Sequence record: NC_019407.1
Length of the DNA stretch: 64,000 bases
Direction: 5' to 3' (one strand)
Of this stretch, positions 49,606-64,000 are shown one piece after another (positions within the stretch are counted from its first letter, which is position 1; the number at the start of each line of letters is the position of its first letter). The position numbers were made by a program, and so were the translations under genes. The notes beneath the pieces are model-generated. The model was not told the origin of the DNA and searched no databases. It saw only the letters and a program-made list of their open reading frames with translations.

Positions 49606-49779
49606 ATGAGCCTTTCCTTCAACGACGATCCCGAGCAATGCGTGCGTGACGCGCTGGACCTCGACCTGGACGAGGTGGCGGTGGTCTGCCGCGACGCCTC
49701 GGGCGAGGTCTATGTCCTGGCCTCCACCAAGGGCCGGCGCCTGGAACGCCTGCTCGCCGACGGGGTCGACCTGACGTGA
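49606..49779 (+). CDS. small hypothetical protein (57 aa, not in the ORF track)
   Basis: Hand translation MSLSFNDDPEQCVRDALDLDLDEVAVVCRDASGEVYVLASTKGRRLERLLADGVDLT; GTGA overlap with the next gene. Confidence 0.68.
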   Translation: MSLSFNDDPEQCVRDALDLDLDEVAVVCRDASGEVYVLASTKGRRLERLLADGVDLT

Positions 49780-50291
49780 AGATCATCGGCGTCGATCCGG
49801 GCATCGCCGGCGGCGTCGTGCTGCTGGACACCAAGGCCTGCACCCTGGCGGTTCACGACATGCCGACCGAGCCCTCGACCAAGGGCCGGCGGCTGGCGTC
49901 CTCGGCCCTCTTGACCGTCTTCCTGCACGACGTCGCCCCCGATCACATCTTCCTCGAAGAGGTCGGGGTCCGGCCCGGCGAGGGCGCGGTCGGGGCCTTT
50001 TCGTTCGGTCGGGGCATGGGACGTCTGGAGGGCGTGGCGGCTGGCACCCGCACCCCGCTGACCATGGTCACGCCCCAGGAATGGAAGCGCGTCACCAAGA
50101 CCCCGGCCGACAAGAAGCGCGCCATCGCCCGCGCCTACCAACTCTTCCCCCGCTGCGTGAAGCTCTTCCAGGGGCCGCGCGGCGGTGAAAAGGACGGGCG
50201 CGCCGAAGCCGCCCTGATCGCCTTCTACGGGGCGATGAAGCTCGGCGCCGTTCCCTCCTCTCCCATCGACCCGGCGGAGTTTCCGGCTTGA
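49776..50291 (+). CDS. ruvC: RuvC-like Holliday junction resolvase
   Basis: IIGVDPG, FLEEV, FSFGRGMG and DGRAEAALIA motifs. Confidence 0.88.
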   Translation: MKIIGVDPGIAGGVVLLDTKACTLAVHDMPTEPSTKGRRLASSALLTVFLHDVAPDHIFLEEVGVRPGEGAVGAFSFGRGMGRLEGVAAGTRTPLTMVTPQEWKRVTKTPADKKRAIARAYQLFPRCVKLFQGPRGGEKDGRAEAALIAFYGAMKLGAVPSSPIDPAEFPA

Positions 50292-50923
50292 CCCAGCCCC
50301 AGTACCTGACGCGCCAAGCGCTTTTCCGCCGCCGCCATCGCGGCGATATTTGGCCCGTCCATGACGAGATGGATTACGCCGCCAGCGCCACCACCGTCAT
50401 CGACGATCCGCGCGAGCCCAACATCGTCCCGACCGGGGTGCTCGACGCGGCCGGCGAGATGCTGCTGAAGGTCCACATGCCGATCAAGGTCCCGCTGGGC
50501 TTCGCCATCCCGCCGGTCGAACGCGACGACGCCGACGAAGTGGTCTCCTACGTCCCCGAGAGCCAGTTGATCGTTTCCGACATCGGCCTGGGTCGCGGCT
50601 ATGTCACCCCCGAGGAAGCCGACGCCGGCGAGATCGACGGCCATGAGGCCCACGAGGAACATCCCGGTCAGGCCTCGATCCGCATCCCCGCCACCAAGGA
50701 GGTGATCGCCGCCCACGGGGCCATGGGCGAGGCGGCCGAACGGGTCGCCGATCAGGTCACCGCCCTGCATGGCGATCTCACCCCCGAGGGGATCATCGTG
50801 CTGCGCGGTCTGATCGCCGCCCAGGGCGAGGCGCTGATCGCCTTCCTCCAGGCGGCTCACACCGCGCGGGCCGAGGGTGGTGAAGAAGACGAGGACGAGG
50901 ACGATGGCCCCGAAGAAGCCTGA
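50288..50923 (+). CDS. hypothetical acidic protein
   Basis: TTG start overlapping the ruvC stop. Confidence 0.72.
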   Translation: MTQPQYLTRQALFRRRHRGDIWPVHDEMDYAASATTVIDDPREPNIVPTGVLDAAGEMLLKVHMPIKVPLGFAIPPVERDDADEVVSYVPESQLIVSDIGLGRGYVTPEEADAGEIDGHEAHEEHPGQASIRIPATKEVIAAHGAMGEAAERVADQVTALHGDLTPEGIIVLRGLIAAQGEALIAFLQAAHTARAEGGEEDEDEDDGPEEA

Positions 50924-51209
50924 CCTCTCGACCCGGTCGGGCGCGGCCCGCCATAGCGCCGAGCGCGACAAGGCCCTCGACGCGGCGGTCGCCGCCTTCC
51001 ACGAGGCGGTGCGGATGTACACGGGCCTGACCGCCCAGGCCAACCTCAACAAGGTCCGCCCGGCCATCGTCGAGGAGTACCGCTTCGGGGCGATCGCCGC
51101 CTTCGAAGCCCTGCTCGACAACATGAAGACCGCCTCCGACGCCCTGGTGATCCTCAACGCCGTGCGCGGGGCCTCCCCGCCCGACAAGCCCAAACGCACC
51201 GAGCTTTAG
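50904..51209 (+). CDS. hypothetical protein
   Basis: Start moved to MAPKKP after GAGGA. Confidence 0.72.
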   Translation: MAPKKPDLSTRSGAARHSAERDKALDAAVAAFHEAVRMYTGLTAQANLNKVRPAIVEEYRFGAIAAFEALLDNMKTASDALVILNAVRGASPPDKPKRTEL

Positions 51210-51212
51210 ATC

Positions 51213-52088
51213 ATGCCGCGCCTTTCCAACGATCGCCACGAGATGTACGCCCTGATGCGGGCCAAGGGCATGAAGCCCCAGGCCGCCGCCCAAGCCGCCG
51301 GCTTCGTGGCCGGCTCGTCGATCTACGCCGAACTGGAGAAGGACCCCGAGGTCCAGGCGCGCGCCCAGGAACTGCTCGACGAGAACAACCTCAAGCGCGA
51401 GCAGATGCGCACCGCCGCCACCGAGGCGGCCAAGGTCGTCGGTCAGGTCTCGGGCCTGTCCAAGGCCTGGGTGCTTCAGAAGCTGGCCGAGAACGCCCAG
51501 ATGGCGGCCCAGGACGGCGACTACAAGGAGAGCAACGCCGCCCTCAAGCTGATCGGCGACGAGTTCGGCATGTTCAGCGGCGCCTCCTCGGAAGGGACCG
51601 AGGGCCAGAACGGCGAGCGCGTCTACGACCTCGACGGGCTGAGCGCCCTCCTCGTCAAGGGAACCTCGGCGATCCCCGTCCCGCCGCCCAAGGTCGACCC
51701 CTCCGCCGCCTTCGACCTGATCGCCGGCAACGGGGCCGCCGCCCGCCGCGCCCGCGAGAGCCGGGCCTTCTCCGACGGCGAGGAAAGCGACGCGGTGTTC
51801 TCCGAGGACGCCGATATCGACGCGGTCATGGACGGGGCCTGGAGCGGCCCCAGCCCCGACGACTACCTGGAGGCCGAAAATTCGCGCCAGGAGGCCCCTG
51901 AAGCCGCTGACCGACCCGAGCCCCCGGCCGACCCCGTTCCGGCCGCTGGCGACCCCGCGCAGGAGCCGGGAACCTGGGAGCAGATCGATCCCAAGACCTC
52001 CCCCGAAGCGATCATGGCGCGCATCCAAGCCGCCGGCCAATCCCCGACTTCCAGCGATGACCGGCCCAAGCGCCGCTCCTCGCGCTGA
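51213..52088 (+). CDS. terS: terminase small subunit
   Basis: N-terminal HTH (RHEMYA...G.KPQAAAQAAGF) and KAWVLQKL...SNAALKLIG...GMF; directly upstream of terL. Confidence 0.8.
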   Translation: MPRLSNDRHEMYALMRAKGMKPQAAAQAAGFVAGSSIYAELEKDPEVQARAQELLDENNLKREQMRTAATEAAKVVGQVSGLSKAWVLQKLAENAQMAAQDGDYKESNAALKLIGDEFGMFSGASSEGTEGQNGERVYDLDGLSALLVKGTSAIPVPPPKVDPSAAFDLIAGNGAAARRARESRAFSDGEESDAVFSEDADIDAVMDGAWSGPSPDDYLEAENSRQEAPEAADRPEPPADPVPAAGDPAQEPGTWEQIDPKTSPEAIMARIQAAGQSPTSSDDRPKRRSSR

Positions 52089-52100
52089 CCCTAGAACGCC

Positions 52101-54833
52101 GTGAGCTACTATCCGATCGAGGACCGCGCCAAGGCCCGGTCCGTCGTCAAGAACCTGCTGGACCTTCAGCGCGAGGCGGTCAAGGCCTCGCGCGGCGGCC
52201 TGATCCTGCCGCCCGACCAGAAGGCGATCATCACCCAGGTCACCGAGACCGAGGACCCGGCCCGCTGGGTCGATCTGCTGGGTCAGTTCGCCGATCGCGT
52301 CCAGACCGATCACCTCGCCCGGCTCAAGCCCCTGGCCAAGCACGACTTCAACGCCTTCTGCGAATACGTCAATCCCGAGGAGGCCCCGGCCTCCAAGTGG
52401 CACGTCTACCTGACCTCGCTCCTCCAGGAGATCGAGAACAACCACGAGCTTGAGCGCTTCGTGCTCAACTGCCCGCCCGGTCACGCCAAGCCGCTCGACG
52501 TCGACACCGAGGTCCTGATGGCCGACGGGTCCTGGAAGCGCCTGGGCGACATCGAGGTCGGAGAATACGTGGTCGGCGAGAGCGGCGCGCGTTGCAAGGT
52601 CACCGCCGTCCATGAGCAGGGCGATCTCGCCACCCTGAAGATCACCACCGCCCACGGCCGCCAGATCATCGCCGCCCCCGACCACGCCTTCCGGGTCGGC
52701 GCCACCTGGAAGGAGGCGGGCAAGCTGCGGCCGGGCGACGCGCTGTCCGTGGTCGGCGCCGCCAACCTCAACTACGACGCCAGCGGCAAGACCATCGATC
52801 ACTTCGAGCTTGCCGCCTACCTCCAGGCCAAGGGCGGACGCTCCTACTTCCACCGCGTCCACAAGAGCGGGCCGAAGACCTACCGCAACGTCTTCCTGTG
52901 GACCTCCGACCACCGCGAGGCCAGCAAGATCAGCGCCTGCCTCAAGCGCCTGGGGATCGCCTTCAAGGGGCGCCTCGCCAAGCATGAGCAGGTCTGGAAG
53001 ATGCGGCTCGCCACCGAATGGGGCGACGCCCTGGCCGAGGAGTACGGCCTGGACGCGCGGATCGACGCGCGCCGGGTTCCGGCCTTTGTCACGAAAGGTG
53101 ACGAGGAGCAGATCGCCCGCTACCTGTCGACCTACACCTCTCTGGCCGGCGAGGCGCCTGACCGCTACACCATCGCGCGCATCATCCTCTACTTCAAGAA
53201 CCCGGCCTTCGCCCGCGACATCCAGCGCCTGTTCGCCGTGGTCGGCGTCAACGCCCGCATCGAGGGGCGCAAGACCGGCCGCACCCGGCTGATCCTGTCG
53301 GGGCCGGACCTGGAGGCCTACTTCGCCGCCGGCCTGACCTACACCGGTCCCAACGCCGACAAGCTCGACGACAAGCGCGCGGCCTTCCCGACCGCGCCCT
53401 CGCTGCTGGCCGACACCGTCACCTGGATCGAGCCGCACGCCGTGCGCCCCTGCCGCTGCCTGACCGTCGAGGACGAGCACACCTTCATCGCCGAAGGGGT
53501 GGTGGTCCACAACTCGACCTACGCCTCGCGCCTGTTCGTGGCGTGGCGCCTGGGGCGCGATCCGCGCCAGAAGATCATCGGCGGGGGCCACTCCCAGCGC
53601 TTCGTCGAGAACGAGTTCTCCGGCAAGATTCGCAACCTCGTGCGCACCCCGCAATATCGCGACGTCTTCCCCGACGTGGTCATCGACCACGCCACCTCGG
53701 CCAAGGACATGTGGGCGATCGCCGGGCACGGCGGGCAGTACGCCGCCAAGGGCGCGGGGCAGGCCATCCACGGTCTGCGCGCCCACTTCGTCTGCGTCGA
53801 CGACCCCTACCGGTCGATCGAAGTGGCCGAGTCCGCGATCGAGCGCGAGAAGATCAAGACGTGGTTCTTCGGCGACGTTGGCTCGCGTTTGTTGCCGCTC
53901 GCCAAAGTATTCCTCATCATGACGCGCTTCCATGAGGAAGATTTGACCGGGGAGATCATCAAACTCAACCAAGAAGTTCTTACCGGCGCCGACCGTTATC
54001 ACATCGTTGAAGCGCCCGCCCTGTGCTACGACCCCGAGAACGACGTCCTGGGCCGCGCCCTGGGCGAAGTTTTGTGGGACTACTATGACTTGCATTATTT
54101 CAAGCGCAAGCGGTCCGAGTGGAAGTACCAAAGATTTGCTTTGGTTTATCAACAACTTGCCGACGCGGCCTCGGACACCTCCATCGCGTCCAAGTTTCAG
54201 ACCTATGATCACCTGCCGCACCTGGAGCCGAAGGTGCTCAAGGCCCGGCTTGACGCGGGTCACGCCGACGAGCGCGGGCGGCCGATTCCGGACCGCAAGG
54301 AGCACTTCCGGCGGGTGGTGGTCAGCGTCGACTCGGCCAACAAGCCCGGCGCCCGCAACGACTACAGCGTCGCCCAGGTCTGGGGGGAGACCCACGCCCG
54401 CAAGCACTACCTGATCTACCAGGAGCGCAAGAAGGTCGACATCACCGGCCTGACCGAGATGATCGAGCGGGTGGCCAAGCGCTACGAGGTCGACGCCATC
54501 CTGGTCGAAGACAAGGGCAACGGCACCGCCTACATCCAGGCGCGGGGCCAGACCGACAGCCAGCGGCGGCTCGCCCCGGCCCCGATCGAGGCGATCCAGG
54601 TCCCGAGCACCTATTCCAAGGAGTTCCGCTTCAACGAGATCGTCCCGATGATCGAGGCCGGCGAGGTCTTCCTGCCGGGCAAGGCCCCGTGGCTCGACCT
54701 GCTGATCCGCGAAATCGGTCAGTTCCCCGAAGGCGCCCATGACGACCAAGTCGACGCCATGACGCAGTACCTCCGCTGGGCCAAGTCCAAGCGCACGCGG
54801 TTTGGCGCGCGCAAGGTCGGCTCGATGGGCTGA
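52101..54833 (+). CDS. terL: terminase large subunit (intein-containing precursor)
   Basis: Walker A PPGHAK|ST, Walker B VCVDDP, IMTRFHEED, and nuclease motifs SVDSA, LVEDKGNG and HDDQVDA. Confidence 0.95.
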   Translation: MSYYPIEDRAKARSVVKNLLDLQREAVKASRGGLILPPDQKAIITQVTETEDPARWVDLLGQFADRVQTDHLARLKPLAKHDFNAFCEYVNPEEAPASKWHVYLTSLLQEIENNHELERFVLNCPPGHAKPLDVDTEVLMADGSWKRLGDIEVGEYVVGESGARCKVTAVHEQGDLATLKITTAHGRQIIAAPDHAFRVGATWKEAGKLRPGDALSVVGAANLNYDASGKTIDHFELAAYLQAKGGRSYFHRVHKSGPKTYRNVFLWTSDHREASKISACLKRLGIAFKGRLAKHEQVWKMRLATEWGDALAEEYGLDARIDARRVPAFVTKGDEEQIARYLSTYTSLAGEAPDRYTIARIILYFKNPAFARDIQRLFAVVGVNARIEGRKTGRTRLILSGPDLEAYFAAGLTYTGPNADKLDDKRAAFPTAPSLLADTVTWIEPHAVRPCRCLTVEDEHTFIAEGVVVHNSTYASRLFVAWRLGRDPRQKIIGGGHSQRFVENEFSGKIRNLVRTPQYRDVFPDVVIDHATSAKDMWAIAGHGGQYAAKGAGQAIHGLRAHFVCVDDPYRSIEVAESAIEREKIKTWFFGDVGSRLLPLAKVFLIMTRFHEEDLTGEIIKLNQEVLTGADRYHIVEAPALCYDPENDVLGRALGEVLWDYYDLHYFKRKRSEWKYQRFALVYQQLADAASDTSIASKFQTYDHLPHLEPKVLKARLDAGHADERGRPIPDRKEHFRRVVVSVDSANKPGARNDYSVAQVWGETHARKHYLIYQERKKVDITGLTEMIERVAKRYEVDAILVEDKGNGTAYIQARGQTDSQRRLAPAPIEAIQVPSTYSKEFRFNEIVPMIEAGEVFLPGKAPWLDLLIREIGQFPEGAHDDQVDAMTQYLRWAKSKRTRFGARKVGSMG
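52491..53513 (+). mobile_element. intein (341 aa) with a degenerate LAGLIDADG domain
   Basis: Starts PLDVDTEVLMADGSWKRLGDI; block B APDH; block F CRCLTV..EHTF; ends VVHN followed by Ser+1. Confidence 0.92.
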
Positions 54834-54905
54834 CGAGGCCCGTTAACCACGTTTGTTAACCTCCGCCGGGGCCTTAACCCTAACACGGCGAGGGTTAACA
54901 GGCCA

Positions 54906-55066
54906 GGGACCCTTCGAAATTAACCTTTCGGGGACCCTGGGAAATCGTAAGGCGGGGACCCTGGCCATTTTCCGCCTGGGGACCCTCCAAAATTCACCGT
55001 CGGGGACCCTGGGAAATTCATCTTCCGGGGACCCTGGCAAATTCAAAGCCGGGGACCCTGGCGAAT
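54906..55066. repeat. 7-copy tandem array with a 24-25 bp period (core GGGACCCT..AAT)
   Basis: Cores at 54906, 54931, 54955, 54979, 55003, 55028 and 55052. Confidence 0.93.
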
Positions 55067-55067
55067 C

Positions 55068-55271
55068 ATGGAGCCGACGATGGCCGGATTTCTCAACCTG
55101 ATCCCGAACCTCGCGCCGTTCGCGCTTTGGGGAATCCTCCTCTGGATCGCCGCCGAGGTGGTCTGGAGCGTCTGCCTCTGGGTCTATGGCCTGCGAACCC
55201 TGTTCAAGCTGCACCGTGACGATGTGGCCGAGGCCCTGACCCTGGAGCGGGCTCTGGCGCCGTTCGACTGA
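55068..55271 (+). CDS. small membrane protein
   Basis: Hydrophobic FALWGILLWIAAEVVWSVCLWVY. Confidence 0.62.
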   Translation: MEPTMAGFLNLIPNLAPFALWGILLWIAAEVVWSVCLWVYGLRTLFKLHRDDVAEALTLERALAPFD

Positions 55272-55340
55272 CCCAAGTCACGGACTGTAGGTTTCGTGAC
55301 AAGGTGAGATATTCCACAACGATTTCAAAGGCTTACTGCG

Positions 55341-55589
55341 ATGTCGATCCGCACGTTCTTCCACGATCTGGCCGTCCGTTTCGTCGTTTTGGGGTGGATT
55401 TTTGCCCGAAAACCGCTGAAATGGGCTCCAAAAGGGCATAATTTTCAGCCCAAACCGCCGGTCCAGGTCGGCGCCCTGGCGGCCGGCTCGCTCCTCGCCC
55501 TCAGTCTGGCGCTCGGCGGGCTCTGGTTCCGCTTCACGTTTCCGGACAAAAGTCAAGTGGTCTCGCGCCGGCCGCAGGCTATGTCATAG
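55341..55589 (+). CDS. small membrane protein
   Basis: Two hydrophobic segments. Confidence 0.55.
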   Translation: MSIRTFFHDLAVRFVVLGWIFARKPLKWAPKGHNFQPKPPVQVGALAAGSLLALSLALGGLWFRFTFPDKSQVVSRRPQAMS

Positions 55590-55650
55590 ACCGTGGGCTT
55601 CGTGACCAGATCACGCTTCCGTTACCGCTCCAGCCCTTGTGAGGCCTCGG

Positions 55651-55755
55651 ATGTTCGCCTTTCTCCGCCGGCTCAGCCTCGCCGCCGTCCATGGCGTGCT
55701 CTGGGCGATCCTCCTGGCGATGTACGCCGTGGGCGGGCCGCGCCGCGCGCCCTAA
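55651..55755 (+). CDS. 34-aa hydrophobic peptide (not in the ORF track)
   Basis: Hand translation MFAFLRRLSLAAVHGVLWAILLAMYAVGGPRRAP; GAGG upstream. Confidence 0.5.
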   Translation: MFAFLRRLSLAAVHGVLWAILLAMYAVGGPRRAP

Positions 55756-55807
55756 AGCGCCATATCTGACGCCTAAGGCCCCCTAAGGCCTCATCTGTGA
55801 GACATTC

Positions 55808-55843
55808 AACGCCCTCGTGTTCCTCTGAACGCGGGGGCGTTTT
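55808..55843 (+). terminator. Rho-independent terminator
   Basis: AACGCCCTCGTGTTC-CTCT-GAACGCGGGGGCGTT followed by TT. Confidence 0.7.
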
Positions 55844-55951
55844 GACGTCGGCGCATTTTTGACTTGACGCGCGAGCGTTTTGACGCGGGCGCATTTTCGA
55901 TTCGACGCGCGAGCGTTTTGACGTCCGAGCATTTTTCAACTTGACGTCGTT
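55837..55951. repeat. 3 x 38-bp tandem repeat
   Basis: GCGTTTTGACG..GCATTTT..(C/T)T(T/C)GACG units at 55837, 55875 and 55913. Confidence 0.88.
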
Positions 55952-55975
55952 CCATTTACCGGGAGCGCCTTAGGG

Positions 55976-56142
55976 TTAACGCCGGCCGCCGAGCCCTGGG
56001 GCGATTTACCACCGCCACGTTAACCTAACGCCTGTTAACCTATCGGTTGTTAAGGTTAACGCCCCGTTAGGGTTAACGCCCCTTAACCCTGCCCGCGTTA
56101 AGGTTAACGCGCCCGCCGCCCGGCCCTACCCGTTAACCTTAA
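55976..56142. repeat. TTAA/GTTAAC cluster
   Basis: 11 TTAA in 167 bp, including GTTAAGGTTAAC twice and its reverse complement once. Confidence 0.8.
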
Positions 56143-56194
56143 CCGCCAGACCCCCGCGCCCAGGCCCTACCCGGTAGGGCCTGACGGCCCTACC
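56122..56194. repeat. GGCCCTACC x3 with a perfect inverted repeat
   Basis: Copies at 56122, 56163 and 56186; GGCCCTACC-C-GGTAGGGCC at 56163-56181. Confidence 0.75.
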
Positions 56195-56253
56195 GGGTAT
56201 GACCCCGCGCCCCGGCGGAGGCCAGGGACCGCCCCGGCGCTTTTTCGCGCCCG

Positions 56254-56285
56254 TTTACCTTTTGTTAACGTCTGGCCTCTAGGGT
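56254..56285 (+). promoter_or_regulatory. CtrA-box promoter P1
   Basis: TTTA-N7-TTAA-N11-TAGGGT. Confidence 0.75.
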
Positions 56286-56333
56286 CGCCCTTGTCCCCGC
56301 CGCACTCCCGCGCCGGGCAAGGAGCTTCCCGCC

Positions 56334-56519
56334 ATGGTCCCCGACTCGATCATGAACCCCCGCGACCACTTCCACCGCCTGCGCGAGGAAACCGCCCGCG
56401 CTCTGGTCGAGGCCTTCGCCGAAACCGACCCCGGCGAGGATTACCGCGCCGAGGAAAAGGCCGGCGCGTGGGTTGTCGCCTATTACGACGCGGCGGGCGA
56501 ATTCGTCGCCTATCTCTAA
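56334..56519 (+). CDS. small hypothetical protein
   Basis: SD AAGGAG after P1. Confidence 0.75.
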   Translation: MVPDSIMNPRDHFHRLREETARALVEAFAETDPGEDYRAEEKAGAWVVAYYDAAGEFVAYL

Positions 56520-56543
56520 CCGCCTTCGCCCCCTGGCGCCGCG

Positions 56544-56575
56544 TTAACGGTTTGTTAACATGTCGGCGCCAGGGT
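56544..56575 (+). promoter_or_regulatory. CtrA-box promoter P2
   Basis: TTAA-N7-TTAA-N11-CAGGGT. Confidence 0.75.
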
Positions 56576-56618
56576 CGCCCTAGCCCGGCGCGTCGCCGCG
56601 CCTTCGGAGAAAACCGCC

Positions 56619-57422
56619 ATGCTCTACACCCCCGCCGCCCGCCGCCTTCGCGGCTATCGCGAAACCGCCGCGAAGAACGCCGAAATTCACGCCCGCCCGC
56701 ACATGGCCGGCAACGTCGCCGGCTACAACGAGTCGGTGTGGCCGACGACGGCGCTAGGCGTCGCCGCCAAGGCCGGCGCCTTCAAGCGCCCCGAAACCGC
56801 CGGCAACTGGTCGGAGGATCGCAAAGCCTATTACGCCCCCGCGTGGCCGGCCGGCTGGCGCGTGCTGGGCACGGCCGAAGAGGTCTGCCGCAAGGAAGGA
56901 TCGCGCCGGGTGGAACATTCCGGATGGTACACGACGCCCGACGACTACAGCGCCACGCTTTCGGGCTATGTGCTGCAAATCCCCGCCCGCGACGGGGTCG
57001 CCCAATACGTCGCCGGGACCGCCCATAGTGAATGGGACGGGGTGACCCTCTACCCCGCCGACCGCTACGACAACCCGCTTGACGCGGCGAGCGCCGCCGA
57101 CCGTCACGCCGAACGCGACGCCGAAGAGGAACGCGAATATCAAACCGCGTGGCAAGCGGGCCAGCGCTACGCCGAACTCGGCGCCGAAGCCAAGGAGGCC
57201 CGCAAGGAAGCGCTGGCGATCCTCGCCGAACGCCGCAAGGTCAAGGGGCTGGAAACCCCCGCCTTGTGCGGCGCGATCCGGGCGCAGGTCGAGGCCCTGC
57301 TAGGCCGGATCGAAGAGGCGCGCGAGGCCCGCGCCAAGCTCAAGGAAGGCGAGGATTCGCGCCTCATGTTCTACCCCTCCGCCCGCCTCGTCGCGGCCTT
57401 CAATGACGGGGCGGCCGGGTGA
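56619..57422 (+). CDS. hypothetical protein
   Basis: SD GGAG; 267 aa. Confidence 0.82.
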   Translation: MLYTPAARRLRGYRETAAKNAEIHARPHMAGNVAGYNESVWPTTALGVAAKAGAFKRPETAGNWSEDRKAYYAPAWPAGWRVLGTAEEVCRKEGSRRVEHSGWYTTPDDYSATLSGYVLQIPARDGVAQYVAGTAHSEWDGVTLYPADRYDNPLDAASAADRHAERDAEEEREYQTAWQAGQRYAELGAEAKEARKEALAILAERRKVKGLETPALCGAIRAQVEALLGRIEEAREARAKLKEGEDSRLMFYPSARLVAAFNDGAAG

Positions 57423-57628
57423 AGGTCGCCCGCGACGCCTTCGCCGTGTTCTGGACCCTCCCCGCCGGAGGGGTCCAATTTCATGCGGACATGAAACGGG
57501 CGCTCTACCCGACCGCCCGCGACGCCGCCCGCGCTTTTCGCGCCATGTTCCCCCGTGACCGCGTTCGGAGCGTCCGCGACGCCTCCGGCCGCTTCCTGGC
57601 CTTCAAGGAGTCCAACCCGTGCGCCTGA
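57419..57628 (+). CDS. hypothetical protein
   Basis: GTGA overlap. Confidence 0.68.
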   Translation: MKVARDAFAVFWTLPAGGVQFHADMKRALYPTARDAARAFRAMFPRDRVRSVRDASGRFLAFKESNPCA

Positions 57629-57900
57629 CTAGCTACAACGTCAACGGAACCGGCTTTAAGGGCGGCTCCGCCCCGCCCGTCCCCGCCCAAGGCCTGACCG
57701 GGCACGCCGACGGCTTGAACCTTTGGGTTCCCTCGCGCGAGCATATCGCCGCCATGCTCCCGCAACGCTGGCGCCACGCCTTCGCCCACGCGGCGTTTTG
57801 GTATGACGCGCACGACAACAAAAAGCCGTGCCGCGCCGACCTCTACGACTCGCGCGGCCGGTACCTGACTCAGGTCTGGGCGCACCCGGTTTTCAGCTAG
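57619..57900 (+). CDS. hypothetical protein
   Basis: GTG start after AAGGAG. Confidence 0.7.
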   Translation: MRLTSYNVNGTGFKGGSAPPVPAQGLTGHADGLNLWVPSREHIAAMLPQRWRHAFAHAAFWYDAHDNKKPCRADLYDSRGRYLTQVWAHPVFS

Positions 57901-57906
57901 GCCAGG

Positions 57907-57941
57907 ACGCCCCGGAAGATTTTCCGGGGCGTTTACCTTTT
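57907..57941 (+). terminator. Rho-independent terminator overlapping P3
   Basis: ACGCCCCGGAA-GATT-TTCCGGGGCGT followed by TTACCTTTT. Confidence 0.8.
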
Positions 57942-57963
57942 GTTAACTTCTGGCCTCTAGGGT
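57932..57963 (+). promoter_or_regulatory. CtrA-box promoter P3
   Basis: TTTA-N7-TTAA-N11-TAGGGT. Confidence 0.78.
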
Positions 57964-58021
57964 GACTTTCGCCGCCGGGCAATCCCGCCCGCCGGACCCT
58001 CTTTCAAGGATTGCTCCCGTC

Positions 58022-59074
58022 ATGACCTCTCATTCCATGGTCGCGCACCGTTGGGCGCAGGACGACGAGAACGGCCGCACCGCGCGCGGCTTCAACATGT
58101 ATTTCGAGCGCTACGGGCGCGGCGCCGACCGCGTCAACGTGATTTTTTCCTACGGGACTCACTTCCCGGCCGCCGCCTTCGTGACCGACGCGCACGGCCG
58201 CCGCGTGGTCCTCTACACGACGCACCGCCGGAGCGTTTCGACCGCGAAACACCTTTCCCACATCCGCCACGCGATTCCGTCGGGCGTGCCGGTGTTTTCC
58301 GTGCCGAACGTGTCGCGGATGCACAAGCCGGGCGGCGCGGGCGACTTCCACGGGGACAACCTGCGCGCCTATATCGAGAGCGCCGCCGGCCTCGCCGAAA
58401 AGGCCAAGCGCGCCCGCGTCAACGGCCCTTGGCTGCTTAGCCAAGCCCGCGACCAACTCGCCGAAGCGCAACGCTACGCCGACGCCTTCAAGGTCAAGGG
58501 CTTCAAGGTCCCGGCCTTGGAAGACGTCGCCGGCCAATGGGCGAAGATGACGGCCGCCAAGGCGCGGGCCGAAGCCAAGGCCCGCAAGGAAGCCGAAAAG
58601 CGCGCCCGCGAAGCCCGCGAAGCCGAACGGCTCGCCGACGCCGAAGCCTTCGCCGCTTGGATGCGCGGCGAGCGCCAGAGCGCCCCGTTTAGCTACCGGG
58701 TGCGCGATGACGGGACCGTCTATCTTCGCCGCTTCCGGGGCGTGGTCCGCGACCTGCGCAGCCAAGAGCGCGACGGCTCGCGCGTCGATGAACTGCAAAC
58801 CTCGCAAGGCGCGGCCGTGCCGTGGGAACACGCGGTCAAGGCCTTCCGGTTCATCAAGCTTTGCCGCGAACGCGGCGAGAGCTTCCACCGCAACGGCCGG
58901 GTGATTCGCGTCGGACACTTCCAAGTTGACGCGATCAGCCCGAACGGGGACATGACGGCCGGTTGCCACCGGTTCGCGTGGGATGAAATCGAACGCATCG
59001 CCAGGGCCGAAGGGGTTTTCGACCTCCCCGCCGACGCCGGCGCCGTCGAAACCCGGCAAGCCGAACCGGCCTAA
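58022..59074 (+). CDS. hypothetical protein
   Basis: Start moved to MTSHSMV after AAGGA; IFSYGTHFP motif; coiled-coil centre. Confidence 0.82.
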   Translation: MTSHSMVAHRWAQDDENGRTARGFNMYFERYGRGADRVNVIFSYGTHFPAAAFVTDAHGRRVVLYTTHRRSVSTAKHLSHIRHAIPSGVPVFSVPNVSRMHKPGGAGDFHGDNLRAYIESAAGLAEKAKRARVNGPWLLSQARDQLAEAQRYADAFKVKGFKVPALEDVAGQWAKMTAAKARAEAKARKEAEKRAREAREAERLADAEAFAAWMRGERQSAPFSYRVRDDGTVYLRRFRGVVRDLRSQERDGSRVDELQTSQGAAVPWEHAVKAFRFIKLCRERGESFHRNGRVIRVGHFQVDAISPNGDMTAGCHRFAWDEIERIARAEGVFDLPADAGAVETRQAEPA

Positions 59075-59092
59075 GCCTCCCCGCCCCTCTCG

Positions 59093-59119
59093 CGCCCCGG
59101 CTCCCCGCCGGGGCGTTTT
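59093..59119 (+). terminator. Rho-independent terminator
   Basis: CGCCCCGG-N7-CCGGGGCG-TTTT. Confidence 0.82.
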
Positions 59120-59129
59120 CGTGTACGCG

Positions 59130-59161
59130 GTAACCTTTTGTTAACTTCTGGCCTCTAGGGT
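59130..59161 (+). promoter_or_regulatory. CtrA-box promoter P4
   Basis: GTAA-N7-TTAA-N11-TAGGGT. Confidence 0.75.
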
Positions 59162-59209
59162 GACTTTCGCCGCCGGGCAATCCCGCCCGCCGGCCAAGGA
59201 TCGCAGACT

Positions 59210-59509
59210 ATGAATCTTTTCGTTGTCGCCATTGACCCCGCCCTCATCCCTTCGGCCGCCGGCTTTGTGGTCGCCTCCCCCTACGGGTGCGGCAAGTGGC
59301 GCGCGTGCGTCGGGAGCGAGGCGGACATGATCGCGCTTCGCGACAAGATGCGCCGCGCGCACCCGGCCCCGGAAGGCTACAGCGTCCAGCCCCTGGCGTC
59401 GTTCCTGGCCTATCTGGAGACGGTCGGGCAAAGCCCTTATGACCAGTTTCGCGCCCGCGACGCCGCCGCCCGCATCCTTGACACCCTGACAACGCACCTC
59501 GCCGCCTAG
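59210..59509 (+). CDS. hypothetical protein
   Basis: SD AAGGA after P4. Confidence 0.78.
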   Translation: MNLFVVAIDPALIPSAAGFVVASPYGCGKWRACVGSEADMIALRDKMRRAHPAPEGYSVQPLASFLAYLETVGQSPYDQFRARDAAARILDTLTTHLAA

Positions 59510-59518
59510 CCCCGCCTA

Positions 59519-59548
59519 GCCCCCGGCCGCGCGCCGGGGGCGCTTTTC
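59519..59548 (+). terminator. Rho-independent terminator
   Basis: GCCCCCGG-N7-CCGGGGGC followed by GCTTTT. Confidence 0.7.
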
Positions 59549-59568
59549 CCTCGAAAGGATCGCCGACC

Positions 59569-59877
59569 ATGACAACCCGTCTTATCGCCGTTCGCGCGCC
59601 GACCGCCGCCGAACTCGCCGACCCGTCCAGCCGCGCGGGCGGCGCCGAAGTCGTCTTTGTGCGGCGCGACCGCGAAGGCCGCACGCGCCTTGTGTTCGCC
59701 GCGACCTGCTACGGCTCATATCAGCAATGGGGCGAAACCCGCGACGTGCTCGCCGACAACGTCGAGGCGGTCACCGTCTGGGCCGAAGGTATGGCGGCCG
59801 TCGCCGACCTCATCGACGAGGACGACGATTTCGAGGGCGACGACGCCCCGGCCGAAGACGACGACGGGGAGGCGTGA
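59569..59877 (+). CDS. hypothetical protein with an acidic tail
   Basis: SD AAGGA. Confidence 0.78.
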   Translation: MTTRLIAVRAPTAAELADPSSRAGGAEVVFVRRDREGRTRLVFAATCYGSYQQWGETRDVLADNVEAVTVWAEGMAAVADLIDEDDDFEGDDAPAEDDDGEA

Positions 59878-59880
59878 GCC

Positions 59881-60300
59881 ATGCGCACAACCAAGGCTCA
59901 ACGCTTCGCCGCCATCGCCTTTGACGCCCTGGCCAAGGCCCTAAGCGAGCCGCGCCAAGCCGTCGCCCGCGTGACCAAATGGGAGGGCGCGGGTCATAGC
60001 TTCGCCAACCTGCAACGCGATTATGAGCGGTACGGCCCCGGCTCGCGCTCATGGTTCGGCCGGGCTGAAATGCGCTTCTTTGGGACGCGCCTAGAGGCCG
60101 CGCCGCTGGATTTCCCGGCGCTGGGCTGCACCCTCTTTCTGACCTCCGAAACCCCGCCCGGCGCCGGCCGGGTCTGGACCCTTCGCGCCTATGTCTGGGC
60201 TTCGGCCGATATCACCACGCTAACCCATGGCGACGAAACCGACGCGGCGACCGCGCAAGCGGCCTTTGACCTGCTTTGGAGGGTCCTTTCGCAGCGGTAA
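59881..60300 (+). CDS. hypothetical protein
   Basis: SD GGAGG; the stop codon lies in the P5 box. Confidence 0.75.
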   Translation: MRTTKAQRFAAIAFDALAKALSEPRQAVARVTKWEGAGHSFANLQRDYERYGPGSRSWFGRAEMRFFGTRLEAAPLDFPALGCTLFLTSETPPGAGRVWTLRAYVWASADITTLTHGDETDAATAQAAFDLLWRVLSQR

Positions 60301-60328
60301 CCTTTTGTTAACTTCTGCCCGCTAGGGT
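60297..60328 (+). promoter_or_regulatory. CtrA-box promoter P5
   Basis: GTAA-N7-TTAA-N11-TAGGGT. Confidence 0.75.
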
Positions 60329-60376
60329 CTTCTTGCGGCCGGGCAATCCCGCCCGGCCGCCCAAGGATTGGACCGC

Positions 60377-60649
60377 ATGACCCGCGCTCAAGCCCTCGCC
60401 GAAATGAACGCCCTTCCCGGTATCATCGCCTCCTTTGAGCGCGAGACGGGTGAATATCGCGTCACCCTGCGCTTTGGTCCGCTCCCCATGGGGCGCGGCG
60501 CCCAAGAGTGGATGCACGCGCGCCGCGAAGCCGTCGCCAGCTACAGCGACGACAAGGCCGACGCCCTGGCCACCGCCCGCGACATGTCCGCCCGCTGGGA
60601 GGCGATGAGCGCCGAAGAGCGTTCGCGCCTCTATCATAACCCCGCCTAA
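60377..60649 (+). CDS. hypothetical protein
   Basis: ATG 9 nt after AAGGA. Confidence 0.78.
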   Translation: MTRAQALAEMNALPGIIASFERETGEYRVTLRFGPLPMGRGAQEWMHARREAVASYSDDKADALATARDMSARWEAMSAEERSRLYHNPA

Positions 60650-60715
60650 AGCCCCGCGCGCCGCCCTGGCCTTCGCCGGGGCGGCTCCCTCAACCCCTCG
60701 CAAGGATCGCACCCC

Positions 60716-61000
60716 ATGACCGCCCGTAAGCCCCTGACCAAGGAACAAAAGGCCCGCCGCCGCGCGACCCGTCGCGCCGCCCGCCTCAACTGGTCGGATG
60801 AGCGCCGCGCTCGCGAATTCGAGCGTCAAGCCCGCTTCTTCCTGATGATCGCCACCCACGCCCAAGGCGCCGGCCAAGGCCAGGAAGCCGCCCGCCTCGC
60901 CACGGTCGCGCAACGCAAGGTCACAAACTGGCGCATGGCGCAGGCCTGCGCCCGGATTAACGCCCTGGCCGCGCATCCGTTCGCGGCCGTGGTCGCCTAA
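60716..61000 (+). CDS. Arg-rich hypothetical protein
   Basis: SD AAGGA. Confidence 0.75.
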   Translation: MTARKPLTKEQKARRRATRRAARLNWSDERRAREFERQARFFLMIATHAQGAGQGQEAARLATVAQRKVTNWRMAQACARINALAAHPFAAVVA

Positions 61001-61013
61001 GGAGGCCCGCCCG

Positions 61014-61196
61014 ATGACGCACCCTCACGCCCTGGCGCTGATCGCCCTCGCTGAAAAGGTGTTGCCGCTTACCCGGCTGCACCCGCTCGACCAACGCGCC
61101 GCCGCCGTCGATCTAATCGGCGACCTCTACCGCCTCGCCGACGATATCGACGCGACCCCGCAAGCCGCCGCCCTGGCGCAACCGAAGGCCGCCTAA
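61014..61196 (+). CDS. small hypothetical protein
   Basis: SD AAGGAGG. Confidence 0.75.
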   Translation: MTHPHALALIALAEKVLPLTRLHPLDQRAAAVDLIGDLYRLADDIDATPQAAALAQPKAA

Positions 61197-61199
61197 GCC

Positions 61200-61790
61200 A
61201 TGAACCCGAACCGCTACCGCCTCGCGCCCCGCGACCGCTTCAGCCGTGAGCTTTCCGAAACGCTCTATCAGGCGGCCGAAGCCGTCGCCCGCGTGATTCC
61301 GCTCATGCCGGAGTCCGCCCCCGATGAGCGCCGCGCGCTGGGCAAGGTCCGCGCCGACCTTCTAACCCATAGCGCCGGCGCCCTTGTTCCCAAGCCGCCG
61401 GCCGCCGTGCTCGCAACCCTCATTTGGGTTGTCGAGATGGCGCAAGATCGCGCCACAAACGCCGATTTCAACACCGCCCAAGAGGGACTCGACGAACACG
61501 AGTCCCTCGCCTTTGTCGCCGACTGGCTGGAGGCCGAAGGCCTAGACGTGACGCCGATTCGCAACGCGCAACCGTCCGCCGACGCCCTGGCCGAACTCGC
61601 CGCCCGCCGCGACGCCGAACAAGCGGCGCTAGACGCCTTGGAGGCCGAAGCCCTGGCCGAAGCGCCGGGCGACGTGATCACCGACATCTTGCGCCCTTAT
61701 CTGGGCTCCATCCTGGCCGAAACCCACGCCGACGACGTGCTAGACGCCCTCACGCGCGCCGGCTTCCAAATCACCCGCAAGGAGGCCTAA
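61200..61790 (+). CDS. hypothetical helical protein
   Basis: Packed chain. Confidence 0.78.
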   Translation: MNPNRYRLAPRDRFSRELSETLYQAAEAVARVIPLMPESAPDERRALGKVRADLLTHSAGALVPKPPAAVLATLIWVVEMAQDRATNADFNTAQEGLDEHESLAFVADWLEAEGLDVTPIRNAQPSADALAELAARRDAEQAALDALEAEALAEAPGDVITDILRPYLGSILAETHADDVLDALTRAGFQITRKEA

Positions 61791-61795
61791 AGCCC

Positions 61796-62365
61796 ATGAC
61801 CGACTCCGCCAAGATCACCGGCGCGCTCGCGCTACTCGCCGTCGCGGCCGATAATCTCCGCCAAGGCCCGGCCATGTCCAAAGCCGCCGACAACGTCACC
61901 AACGTCTGTAACTACGCCCTGACGCGCGCGGCCATGCTCAAGGCCGCCGACCAAATCGGCGAGGCGCTGGAGGCGCTGGGCGCCCTGCAAGCGGGCGGCT
62001 ATGTGATCGCCCGCCGCCGCGACGTTTTCACCGATGCGGGCGAGAAGCTGGGCGACCTGTTGGCGGCGCTTTATGACGCCGTCCCGAACTACGCCGTAAG
62101 ATCGCAGCGCCTCGCCGACGCCCTGGCCCCGGCGCGAAATTACGTCTATCAGCCCCGGTTCCGGGTCAAGCTGGACGCCGCGCCCGGCGCGCTTTTGACC
62201 GACTGCGACACGGGCGCAACGGTCTATTTCCAGCCGGGCGACGACGCCGACGCCTTCCGGGCCGAATTCGCCCCGTGGGTTCACGCCGCCAACGTGACGG
62301 GCGACGGCGCGGCCCTGGCCTCGATGATGAACCCGACCGCCGAAGAGTATTTCAGCCCCGCCTAA
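61796..62365 (+). CDS. hypothetical protein
   Basis: Start moved to MTDSAK after AAGGAGG. Confidence 0.78.
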   Translation: MTDSAKITGALALLAVAADNLRQGPAMSKAADNVTNVCNYALTRAAMLKAADQIGEALEALGALQAGGYVIARRRDVFTDAGEKLGDLLAALYDAVPNYAVRSQRLADALAPARNYVYQPRFRVKLDAAPGALLTDCDTGATVYFQPGDDADAFRAEFAPWVHAANVTGDGAALASMMNPTAEEYFSPA

Positions 62366-62475
62366 GTCATCATTCCTACCGTCTATGACTTGTCACCGGC
62401 CGAAGTCTTACCCGGTGACAGTCTGGGCAAGTAAAGCTCACTCTGGATTTTATGACTTAGCGCAAAGGATTGAAA

Positions 62476-62550
62476 TTGCTCGAAAAATTCCTAGAAGCTC
62501 ACAAAGTCGTTTTCTGGCTGCTCTTGCTGGCCTGTTTGTGGCGCTTTTAA
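62476..62550 (+). CDS. candidate 24-aa hydrophobic peptide
   Basis: TTG start 6 nt after AAAGGA; MLEKFLEAHKVVFWLLLLACLWRF; atypical AT-rich codons. Confidence 0.35.
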   Translation: MLEKFLEAHKVVFWLLLLACLWRF

Positions 62551-62579
62551 CGGTTTGTTAACCCCTGGCCCTCTAGGGT
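62547..62579 (+). promoter_or_regulatory. CtrA-box promoter P6
   Basis: TTAA-N7-TTAA-N12-TAGGGT. Confidence 0.8.
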
Positions 62580-62633
62580 CGAATTCCCGGCGCGGCAATC
62601 CCGCCGCCCGGCCTTCCTTCGGAGCTTCTGATC

Positions 62634-63080
62634 ATGTTCGCTTCCGTGACCCTTCCCGCCCATGACGCCCAAGGCCTGAGCCTCGAAACCGTCCACATGG
62701 TTTTCGCCCGTGAACTGGCGCAACACTTCGAGCACGTAATTTCCGCCCCCGTGATCGAAAGCTGGACCGACGAGGAAACCGGCGCCGTGCAAGAGCAAGC
62801 CGCCGTTTGCTTCACCGTTTCGGCGACCCCGGCCGCGTGGGAAGCCAAGGGCGGCCGGCTCGCGCGCCGGCTGGAAAACCTCGCCGCGCGCTATGCCGCC
62901 GACTGCGACGCCCCGGCCCTGACTGTCACCCATTGCGACGGGCAAACGGTCTATGTCGGCGCTCTGGAAGCCCTGGCGCGCCCCGCCCCGGTGCAAGGCC
63001 CGACCCGCGCGGCGGACCCGGCTTTCCTCCCCCGCCAGCGTGAAGACAAGGCCGCCCGCTTCGATCGCCTGACCGCCTAG
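62634..63080 (+). CDS. hypothetical protein
   Basis: SD GGAG after P6. Confidence 0.78.
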   Translation: MFASVTLPAHDAQGLSLETVHMVFARELAQHFEHVISAPVIESWTDEETGAVQEQAAVCFTVSATPAAWEAKGGRLARRLENLAARYAADCDAPALTVTHCDGQTVYVGALEALARPAPVQGPTRAADPAFLPRQREDKAARFDRLTA

Positions 63081-63098
63081 CCCCTGGCCTCCCCCTAG

Positions 63099-63129
63099 CG
63101 CACCGCCCCTAGAAAGGCGGTGCGCTTTT
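63099..63129 (+). terminator. Rho-independent terminator
   Basis: GCACCGCC-N8-GGCGGTGC followed by GCTTTT. Confidence 0.78.
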
Positions 63130-63138
63130 CTGTGTCTG

Positions 63139-63171
63139 TTTACTTGTTGTTAAGGAATAGCCTGCTAGTGT
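63139..63171 (+). promoter_or_regulatory. CtrA-box promoter P7
   Basis: TTTA-N7-TTAA-N12-TAGTGT. Confidence 0.72.
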
Positions 63172-63222
63172 CTCCTTGTCGGCGGACGCATCCCGCGCCC
63201 GCCCCTTTCTGGATCGCTTCCC

Positions 63223-63615
63223 ATGGCTCGCCCCTCTGACCTGCTCAACGTCAACGCCGCCCGCGTCCTGGCTTGCCTTGAGCCTATCGCCGCCGCCGCT
63301 AAGACGGCCCCGGCCGCCGACCGCGCCGCCCTTTCCTACCTGCTCGACGCTGGCGAGTATGTCGCCGCGTGGCGCCGCAACCTCACGGAAACCGACCGCC
63401 GCAAGGCCTATGGCGCGGCCTGCGCCGCCGAAGCCCTGGCGCTCGCCAACGCCTATCAGCCCGCCACCCTGCAAGGCGGCGCCGTCCGCCGCGCTCTGGG
63501 CGCCTATGCCGCCGCCCTTAAGGTCCTGCTAGACGGGGAGCCGGTTAAGGCGGTCCGCGCCGCCGAAGGCGCGGCGCTTTCGGTCCGCGCTCGCTACGCC
63601 AACACCCGCCTTTAA
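63223..63615 (+). CDS. Ala-rich hypothetical protein
   Basis: ORF after P7; the stop codon lies in the P8 box. Confidence 0.75.
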   Translation: MARPSDLLNVNAARVLACLEPIAAAAKTAPAADRAALSYLLDAGEYVAAWRRNLTETDRRKAYGAACAAEALALANAYQPATLQGGAVRRALGAYAAALKVLLDGEPVKAVRAAEGAALSVRARYANTRL

Positions 63616-63643
63616 CCTCTTGTTAAGACCTCCCGGCTATGGT
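63612..63643 (+). promoter_or_regulatory. CtrA-box promoter P8
   Basis: TTAA-N7-TTAA-N11-TATGGT. Confidence 0.78.
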
Positions 63644-63669
63644 CGGGAGGTCGCAAGGAGACACCCGAC

Positions 63670-63864: not shown

Positions 63865-63927
63865 CCAGACCCCCGCCCCGCCCCCGGTCGGACCGGTCGG
63901 GGGTGTGTCCCATAATGACACACCCCC
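63854..63927. repeat. cluster of perfect palindromes
   Basis: GTCTGGTC-T-GACCAGAC, CCGGTC-G-GACCGG and GGGGGTGTGTC-CCATAAT-GACACACCCCC. Confidence 0.8.
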
Positions 63928-64000
63928 CGCCACCTAGTATCTTTTTTGATTCGGAGGGACCCAAAGGCCCCCTACGTTAACCATTTTTGGCGGCGCCCCC

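Follow-up and report, generated by a model that had tools for sequence, protein, structure and literature searches.

A tandem array of 24-bp units following terL in the direct terminal repeat of Caulobacter phage CcrMagneto, a candidate terminase recognition site

Tandem arrays of protein-binding sites tied to the ends of phage genomes are a familiar kind of element. In phage lambda, cosB contains the R sites bound by the small terminase gpNu1 (TerS) together with a site for IHF, and cosQ is a termination element located upstream of cosN. The pac sites of SPP1/SF6 (pacL, pacC and pacR) and of P1 (four plus three hexamer repeats flanking the cut) are made of repeated short boxes, and a ring-shaped, helix-turn-helix-type small terminase recognises them. 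Phages T7 and T3 have exact direct terminal repeats, the site pacB and, next to the repeat boundaries, arrays of short direct repeats (the SRL and SRR heptamers), which have been implicated in concatemer processing. Directly repeated units are also characteristic of replication iterons, such as those of R6K gamma (seven 22-bp repeats), RK2 oriV, P1 oriR and lambda ori (four repeats of about 19 bp). How phages with long exact repeats (T5, SPO1 and phiCbK types) choose and cut their ends is poorly understood. In this study, an array of seven 24-bp units was characterised by computational analysis in the direct terminal repeat (DTR) of Caulobacter phage CcrMagneto (hereafter Magneto), next to the large terminase gene terL, and it is discussed as a candidate recognition site for the terminase.

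The DNA analysed (the window) corresponds to the final 64,000 bp of the Magneto genome (JX100812.1), which it matched with 100% identity; window positions are record positions minus 154,929. The ends of phiCbK were mapped by tag ligation by Gill et al. 2012 (PMC3556154), and the coverage steps of Magneto were found in the same work to be identical to the phiCbK ends, so that the end of the window is the right physical end of the genome. The DTR was reported to be about 10 kb, and the TerL class of phiCbK was proposed as a new packaging class (PMC3556154). In the GenBank annotation the left boundary of the DTR, between positions 54054 and 54055, cuts codon 652 of terL.

Seven GGGACCC cores, starting at 54906, 54931, 54955, 54979, 55003, 55028 and 55052, follow each other head-to-tail at spacings of 25, 24, 24, 24, 25 and 24 bp. 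Each core is followed by T, four nucleotides, AAT or ATT and a variable tail, and the consensus of the unit is CC(G/A)GGGACCC-T-nnn-R-A-W-T-T with a variable spacer of 5–7 nt. Tandem Repeats Finder detected the segment 54929–55066 with a period of 24, 5.7 copies and a score of 111. The copy number, spacings and unit anatomy given in a preliminary description of this DNA were thereby reproduced. The sequence GGGGACCCT occurs six times in the window, always within the array, compared with 0.97 expected occurrences, and a count of six was reached in none of 100 shuffles. When a 25-nt weight matrix derived from 90 units of 16 phages was applied to 214 kb of the Magneto genome, the seven units scored 23–30 bits and the best other site at most 16 bits, the full motif being confined to the array and thus present once per unit genome. 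Because of the shuffle test of GGGGACCCT and the uniqueness in the weight-matrix scan, chance is excluded and the array is real. A depletion of GGGACCC in the rest of the genome was unconvincing (27 observed versus 36 expected under a third-order Markov model).

The array begins 73 bp past the stop codon of terL at 54833 and ends at the first gene of the DTR. The preliminary description had located it immediately after terL, as found here, and at the edge of the terminal repeat; it does lie inside the DTR, but 852 bp in from the left boundary and not at the edge. No feature is annotated at this position in the GenBank records. The text of Gill et al. 2012 (PMC3556154) does not contain the terms "tandem repeat", "iteron" or "repeat sequence", the motif is not mentioned by Mascolo et al. 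2022 (PMC9437464), which treats CtrA boxes only, and a full-text literature search with the core and "Caulobacter" gave a single paper, which was unrelated; the array thus appears to be previously undescribed.

The same core is also found at the other end of the DTR. An additional GGGACCC, which had been pointed out near 63956, is real and belongs to a conserved element of fixed offset that starts 45 nt before the right genome end. The 45-mer GGGACCCAAAGGCCCCCTACGTTAACCATTTTTGGCGGCGCCCCC is identical in Magneto, phiCbK and Rogue, and the sequence upstream of it has diverged. In CcrPW and CcrSC, GGGACCCAAGGCC is kept at an offset of 45–46 nt and the intervening bases differ. In Shapirovirus, Poindextervirus, Colossusvirus PW and Bertelyvirus SC, GGGACCCAA(A)GGCC starts 45–46 nt before the right boundary; a given 7-mer would fall by chance within 70 nt of a chosen site with a probability of about 0.015. 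TTAAC boxes are also present inside the right-terminus element. A second copy of GGGACCCAAGGCCCCC lies outside the window, 172 bp beyond the right DTR boundary of Magneto (position 10118 of locus L272), in a hairpin with a 9-bp stem followed by TTTG; the right cut of Magneto is bracketed by this copy and the one at −45 nt. CcrPW has a further copy 72 bp beyond its right boundary. What is new at this locus is that the two ends of a long DTR share a core, which forms an array at one of them and a single copy at a fixed offset at the other.

Wherever the genome ends are annotated, the array is within the DTR and towards its left end, at a distance from that end of 852 bp in Magneto, 844 bp in Rogue and BL10, 417 bp in CcrPW and 2316 bp in CcrSC. 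In Colossus, a solitary full unit (GGGGACCCTTCGAAATT) is located 59 nt before the coverage-defined left end, outside the DTR, and the six-unit array follows 355 bp after that end, so that units flank the cut. The right end of Colossus, with two copies close by, is naturally diffuse. In Brevundimonas phage Bajun (ON529858.1), whose ends are unmapped, an element matching that of the right end was found at record position 100640 in the syntenic intergenic region, and from this element the right end of Bajun is predicted near record position 100,685; its left end is predicted at the place in terL that corresponds to codon 652 of Magneto.

The preliminary description had recommended a comparison of copy number in relatives, and this comparison revealed arrays of 4–9 units, always in the orientation of terL and spaced mostly by 23–25 bp (range 22–26, mode 24), in phages of Caulobacter, Brevundimonas, Sphingobium and Citromicrobium and in metagenomic relatives. 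Seven units were found in Magneto, Ccr10 and Swift; six in phiCbK, BL57, Rogue, BL10, Colossus, CcrPW and Bajun; five in CcrSC, BL9 and Sphingobium phage Lacusarx; nine in Brevundimonas phage Marchewka; and four in Citromicrobium phage RXM. In these named phages the array is consistently located downstream of a resolvase-terS-terL module, and the array-bearing phages range from 104 kb to 350 kb with hosts of at least four genera. Among six close relatives the core was invariant in 39 of the 39 unit copies, the spacers varied, and the insertions and deletions were of whole units. When the array and its surroundings (651 bp) were used as a blastn query, the match to Colossus, a very distant relative of 280 kb, was limited to the array itself. 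In distant members the second half of the unit is changed (e.g., GGGACCC-T-N6-8-CAGAA-N3-5-GGCCGG) and the core is not.

A pattern scan of IMG/VR gave more arrays adjoining TerL homologues of 35–53% identity, together with many irrelevant GGGACCC repeats, e.g., in collagen-like coding sequences with a period of 18, 21 or 27. As a less biased sample, loci were collected by TerL protein similarity, with at least three same-strand cores downstream as the criterion for an array; the first search of this kind gave mostly TerL relatives of 34% identity or less, which were reused as negative controls. The array was present in 13 of the 16 loci with a TerL of at least 35% identity and available downstream sequence, usually within 0.7 kb past the terL stop, and in none of the 74 loci with a TerL of 34% identity or less (Fisher p = 3e-13). 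The 206 kb of downstream sequence from the latter contained one forward and one reverse core. Detectable TerS homologues were likewise restricted to the TerL clade that carries the array. No array of this family was found in a pattern scan of bacteria and archaea with one genome per species (185,579 species); the 115 loci retrieved were mostly repeats of Actinomycetota and Myxococcota, and they were discarded as host-chromosome arrays, since none fitted the unit matrix and none was accompanied by TerL.

One relative departs from the common core. In L207, a 225-kb metagenomic relative with a TerL of 61% identity, no GGGACCC follows terL; a short array is present instead at 6855–6955, with the core GTCCGGAT preceded by GAAAT, and the TerS of this phage is altered in its putative recognition helix (GSNAHLEL). 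The swap of the core together with the change in the helix is an apparent co-variation, which as a single case is only suggestive. Three IMG/VR contigs of about 130 kb (L043, L044 and L077) contain 18–40 perfect tandem copies of a 25–26 bp unit, CCGGGACCCTCGGGGAACGGGGAGC, which shares the core GGGACCCT; no TerL was found in the flanks fetched for them, and L043 had no match in the phage database.

The genes upstream of the array form a packaging module (Table 1). Residues 1–137 of TerS matched the structure 21di of the Protein Data Bank (PDB), "Pam5 small terminase" (nine chains), with E = 3.5e-14, and the N-terminal 125 or so residues are conserved in all array-bearing loci. By homology to this solved nine-chain structure, TerS is a bona fide small terminase, whose N-terminal portion of about 137 amino acids is the DNA-binding and oligomerisation region. 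Phage Pam5 itself has a different TerL, no layout of the DTR type and no GGGACCC. The product of gp324, labelled only "RNaseH-like" in the annotation, is a Holliday-junction resolvase of the RuvC/MOC1 type, and its homologues lie directly upstream of terS in every distant relative, loci L209–L222 included, and in phage RXM. Resolvase, terS and terL thus form a conserved packaging module that accompanies the array across the clade.

Table 1. Coordinates of the array and of associated features in the window.
Feature	Position	Strand	Basis or remark
gp324, RuvC/MOC1-like Holliday-junction resolvase	49776–50291	+	PHROG 1770, E = 3e-46; PDB MOC1 6kvn, E = 4e-7
terS, small terminase	51213–52088	+	PHROG 11494, E = 3e-181
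terL, intein-containing large terminase	52101–54833	+	annotation; PMC3556154
Right DTR copy, 9,946 bp	54055–64000	+	GenBank annotation
Four TTAAC boxes (CtrA half-site-like), directly upstream of the array	54842–54900		not canonical TTAA-N7-TTAA
Seven-unit tandem array of 24-bp repeats	54906–55066	+	core positions, Tandem Repeats Finder, weight matrix
gp329 (identical to gp001), first DTR gene, small hydrophobic protein	55068–55271	+	annotation
Right-terminus element GGGACCCAAAGGCCCCCTACGTTAACCATTTTTGGCGGCGCCCCC, 45 nt	63956–64000	+	ends at the right genome end

Since the motif is unique and reads in one direction, is co-inherited with terS and terL, lies towards the left end of the DTR and recurs as a core at a fixed place at the right end, a role in the recognition of the termini and in packaging is suggested and is favoured over chance or coding. 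We propose, with about even confidence, that in phages of the phiCbK type (Dolichocephalovirinae-like), whose genomes are packaged with long exact direct terminal repeats, the array is a cis-acting terminase loading and recognition array and the right-end copy a termination element. According to this proposal, in a replicating concatemer each DTR would carry a multi-copy, directional platform of GGGACCC-T-nnn-RAWTT units, between a few hundred bp and about 2 kb in from the left boundary, and one GGGACCCAA(A)GGCC site 45–46 bp in from the right one. The array would be the place where a sequence-specific part of the terminase holoenzyme oligomerises, the small terminase, probably a nonameric ring, being the obvious candidate; the bound complex might then recruit TerL for the cut at the left end and for rightward packaging, and the single right-hand site would set the terminal cut at a fixed distance. 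The identity of the binder, and binding as the event that drives cutting and packaging, are what we infer. Several features agree with those of sites of the pac or cos type. The array is near the end at which packaging starts and on the retained side of the cut, at a distance longer and more variable than in the classic cases; it is unique or nearly so in the Magneto genome; it is co-inherited with the terminase, a linkage confounded by shared ancestry and synteny; and a related element is found at the termination cut in Magneto, phiCbK, Rogue, CcrPW and CcrSC.

A number of observations weigh against this proposal. The early DTR region always follows terL, so that the linkage of array and terL is partly one of synteny and common descent, and this region is packed with other regulatory repeats. 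Between the left cut and the array lie 355–2316 bp, a variable distance and a long one by the standard of lambda cosB or SPP1 pacL and pacR. Seven tandem 24-bp units are more iteron-like than any characterised pac or cos site. The packaging role suggested in the preliminary description is supported in part, by the linkage to terS and terL over deep divergence, the location in the DTR and the core at the right end; the array is 0.35–2.3 kb away from the left cut and not beside it. No unit was found upstream of the left cut in Shapirovirus, and the annotated right boundary of BL9, which the annotation places inside a coding sequence, is without the right-end element. Bajun has a second array (locus L404, record positions 94713–94850) about 10 kb after the first, with five forward units and one inverted unit at a spacing of 23 bp, so the arrays are not strictly unique per genome. 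The binding by packaging proteins is a prediction from sequence. Finally, the predicted recognition helix of TerS varies widely (GSxxYxEL versus PSxxNASxL) under an invariant core. The core may therefore be recognised by some other part of TerS or by TerL, the resolvase or a host protein.

The anatomy of the array is best matched by iterons, that is, by a replication origin or a plasmid-like maintenance or partition site on which an initiator or partition protein of the phage oligomerises, an explanation that we nevertheless consider rather unlikely as a whole. Four to nine head-to-tail units of the same orientation, each with about 17 conserved bp and a variable spacer, are textbook-like; iterons are repeats of about 17–22 bp spaced by about 21–24 bp, and the spacing here is 22–26 bp with a mode of 24. 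In addition, the array is found once per unit genome in Magneto and its copy number changes by whole units. CtrA-type boxes flank it, as they flank the chromosomal origin of Caulobacter, and under this explanation the TTAAC (CtrA-like) boxes might gate the site to the host cell cycle and support an episomal "pseudolysogen" state. Episomal persistence has been reported for Dolichocephalovirinae (PMC12195562). Iterons had already been named as an alternative in the preliminary description; the spacing bears them out but the surroundings do not. No AT-rich unwinding element was found, the GC content being at least 0.51 in every 100-bp interval from 54400 to 56600, no DnaA box with up to one mismatch occurs within 700 bp of the array, and no initiator-like gene is adjacent, the neighbours being terL, a membrane-type protein of 63–67 amino acids and small proteins without Pfam domains. 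The replication module is more than 100 kb away, with replication genes at 80–106 kb of the record, and the GC skew tracks gene orientation, switching near 79 kb and 160 kb and not at the array. Iterons usually co-evolve fast with their initiator, whereas the GGGACCC core is invariant down to a TerL identity of 35%, and they offer no explanation for the lone core found at a constant distance of 45 nt from the right end. This last objection applies equally to an operator or transcriptional roadblock coated by a phage or host protein, which we consider unlikely. The role of such a site would be to regulate gp001/gp329, the first early gene, or, in concatemers, to shield the early DTR genes from late terS-terL read-through. 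In agreement with it, in Shapiro- and Poindexterviruses the last unit overlaps the start of the first DTR gene and its ribosome-binding site, and Bajun and Marchewka also have a small open reading frame (ORF) that begins a short way past the array. No intrinsic terminator was found from the terL stop to the first DTR gene, and the array is surrounded by further regulatory repeats, namely TTAAC boxes, repeats of TTGACG and GTCACG dyads. A core that is invariant across alphaproteobacterial hosts would suit a conserved host factor, as for CtrA boxes (PMC9437464). However, some 1.4 kb free of annotated genes comes after the array in Colossus and CcrPW, and the genes beyond it are on the opposite strand. 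The distance and order with respect to the downstream genes vary widely, the array lying up to 2.5 kb after terL and sometimes with intervening ORFs. Operators are usually dispersed over several promoters, whereas this motif occurs at one place only, and the one-genome-per-species scan revealed no such arrays in bacteria or archaea.

In T5, a repeat-rich injection stop signal lies at the inner edge of the entering terminal repeat. If the right end of Magneto entered first, the array, about 9.1 kb in and towards the inner edge of the repeat, could be a stop or pause signal of this kind; the DTR is similar in size to that of T5, at about 10 kb (PMC3556154), and the phage encodes a protein similar to T5 A1. 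We nonetheless consider this very improbable, for the A1-like gene is outside the DTR and so could not be expressed from first-step DNA (PMC3556154), the distance from the right end varies with the position of the array and with the size of the DTR (10–24 kb), and no two-step transfer has been reported for these phages. The constancy of the core under a changing TerS also admits a reader other than the TerS helix-turn-helix, namely a factor conserved across Alphaproteobacteria or across the phage clade, the array and the CtrA-type boxes then acting together as a cell-cycle-gated control point at the DTR edge. This is distinctly unlikely in our judgement; the site could be, for example, a phage origin or episome-maintenance site that is silent in CtrA-rich swarmer cells, and if true, such gating would couple the formation of genome ends, the licensing of replication and the reported pseudolysogeny. 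Readings that dispense with a protein site on DNA, i.e., a coding repeat, a structured RNA or leader, an array like the clustered regularly interspaced short palindromic repeats (CRISPR) or a chance repeat, are highly improbable when taken together, and the coding, RNA and chance readings are essentially excluded. ORFs do overlap the array on both strands (54853–55101, plus strand; 54843–55214, minus strand), but spacings of 22–26 bp within and between phages disrupt any reading frame, and neither ORF gave a match above the curated Pfam threshold, the minus-strand ORF showing only a weak sub-threshold match to Cornifin (E = 0.015, 15.9 bits versus a cut-off of 34.8). The predicted RNA fold, formed by self-complementary CCAGGG-A-CCCTGG segments, had a z-score of −4.1 against shuffles, but the only Rfam match was sR34 (21 bits versus a gathering score of 40, E = 0.69), and the helix shows no compensatory changes, since the core never varies and covariation cannot back a structure. 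The units are too short for CRISPR, as the preliminary description had it: only 5–7 nt vary in a whole period of 24 bp, and with no cas genes in the annotation the locus does not qualify as a CRISPR array. Chance is excluded by the shuffle and weight-matrix results given above. Two further candidates were tried and rejected: a sigma-54 promoter (TGGCA-N9-GC), which fits one or two units by eye and is unconserved in relatives, and a CsrA-sponge-like series of GGA repeats, in which the GGA lies inside the self-complementary stem and whose hosts, to our knowledge, lack CsrA.

The last unit of the Magneto array overlaps the start region of gp329. The annotated start of this gene at 55068 has no Shine-Dalgarno sequence, and an ATG at 55080 is preceded by GGAG; since, in addition, the alignment to PHROG 7368 begins at residue 5, the true start is probably 55080. 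In phiCbK and Rogue the last unit ends in AAGGAG. On the upstream side, the four TTAAC boxes are invariant in six relatives, and many of the other phages and loci that were examined also have clusters of TTAAC or GTTAAC next to the array. Their presence fits the high density of CtrA boxes described in the DTRs of phiCbK-like phages by Mascolo et al. 2022 (PMC9437464). The window has just three canonical CtrA dyads (TTAA-N7-TTAA), at 56544, 62547 and 63612, where none would be expected; all three lie in the DTR, in agreement with the same report. The array units contain no such dyad and hence do not qualify as CtrA-binding sites.

Other repeats were observed in the early region of the DTR. Clusters of TTAAC/GTTAAGGTTAAC boxes (54842–54900 and 55965–56145) flank the first three DTR genes. 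At 55829–55946 there are about three copies of a 38-bp unit, each with TTGACG, similar to the −35 element of Caulobacter, and a GC-rich hairpin followed by a run of T; these may be tandem early promoters or terminators. A dyad GTCACGGAC...TTTCGTGAC is repeated at 55277–55303 and 55583–55609, upstream of gp330 and gp331, and is probably an early promoter or operator element; two distant loci, L207 and L215, also have the GTCACGAAA/TTTCGTGAC motif downstream of terL. An unannotated ORF of 1,318 amino acids, antisense to terS and terL (50793–54749, minus strand), lies opposite well-supported genes and is probably an artefact of high GC content. The intein of TerL (residues 131–471) is present in jumbo phages of Caulobacter and Brevundimonas and absent from more distant array-bearing relatives (L023, L058, L059, L065 and L106), in which residues 130 and 472 are contiguous. 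At the level of the whole Magneto genome (204 kb, covered by window positions 1–54054 and loci L272–L274), at least 14 palindromic hexamers are wholly absent, among them CCGCGG (176 expected), CTCGAG (138), CCCGGG (86), GGGCCC (82), CTGCAG (49), AGATCT (48) and GGATCC (47). Such extreme avoidance, on which Gill et al. 2012 (PMC3556154) do not comment, suggests that restriction systems have exerted strong selection.

The array provides a concrete candidate recognition site for the phiCbK class of TerL, for which none had been defined before. The right-end element can be used for predicting unmapped termini, and the array is a simple marker of this packaging clade in metagenomes. If TerS binds the array, the system would be a good model of how a ring-shaped small terminase reads sites 24 bp apart.

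Among the known systems, the proposed division into a loading site and a termination site would find its parallel in cosB and cosQ of lambda. In both systems a multi-site platform lies just inside the end at which packaging starts, and a separate single element, needed in lambda to finish packaging, is located a few tens of bp upstream of the cut; reading in one direction and genetic linkage to the terminase genes are also shared. In contrast, lambda has three R sites of 16 bp within about 120 bp of the nick and cohesive ends of 12 nt, whereas here 4–9 units of 24 bp lie 0.35–2.3 kb from the cut and the ends are long direct repeats of blunt type (10–24 kb). Here, moreover, one core is found at both places. 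The pac boxes of SPP1 and P1 flank the cut, like the solitary upstream unit and the downstream array of Colossus, but these phages package by the headful mechanism from a single pac cut and have permuted genomes, and their boxes of 6–7 bp with a helical phasing of about 10 bp differ from 24-bp units, with no sequence similarity between them. The exact terminal repeats of T7 and T3, with short direct-repeat arrays near their boundaries, resemble the arrangement described here, although in T7 the repeat is 160 bp, its arrays lie outside it and are made of 7-bp units, and the terminase families differ; in Magneto and its relatives the array is inside a repeat of about 10 kb.

With the iteron systems the array shares unit number, length, spacing, head-to-tail orientation, a conserved core with a variable spacer and changes in copy number by whole units. 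It differs from them in its location in the packaging and not the replication module, in its surroundings, which are without an adjacent AT-rich element, DnaA box or initiator gene, and in a core conserved well past the usual range of iteron-initiator pairs. The clusters of CtrA boxes (PMC9437464) belong to the same DTR compartment of the same phages, with TTAAC boxes both beside the array and in the right-terminus element. Like the array, they are conserved across divergent phages, their reader being conserved. The two kinds of site differ in sequence (GGGACCC-T-nnn-RAWTT versus TTAA-N7-TTAA) and in distribution, the array being a tandem series at a single place and the CtrA sites being scattered upstream of many genes.

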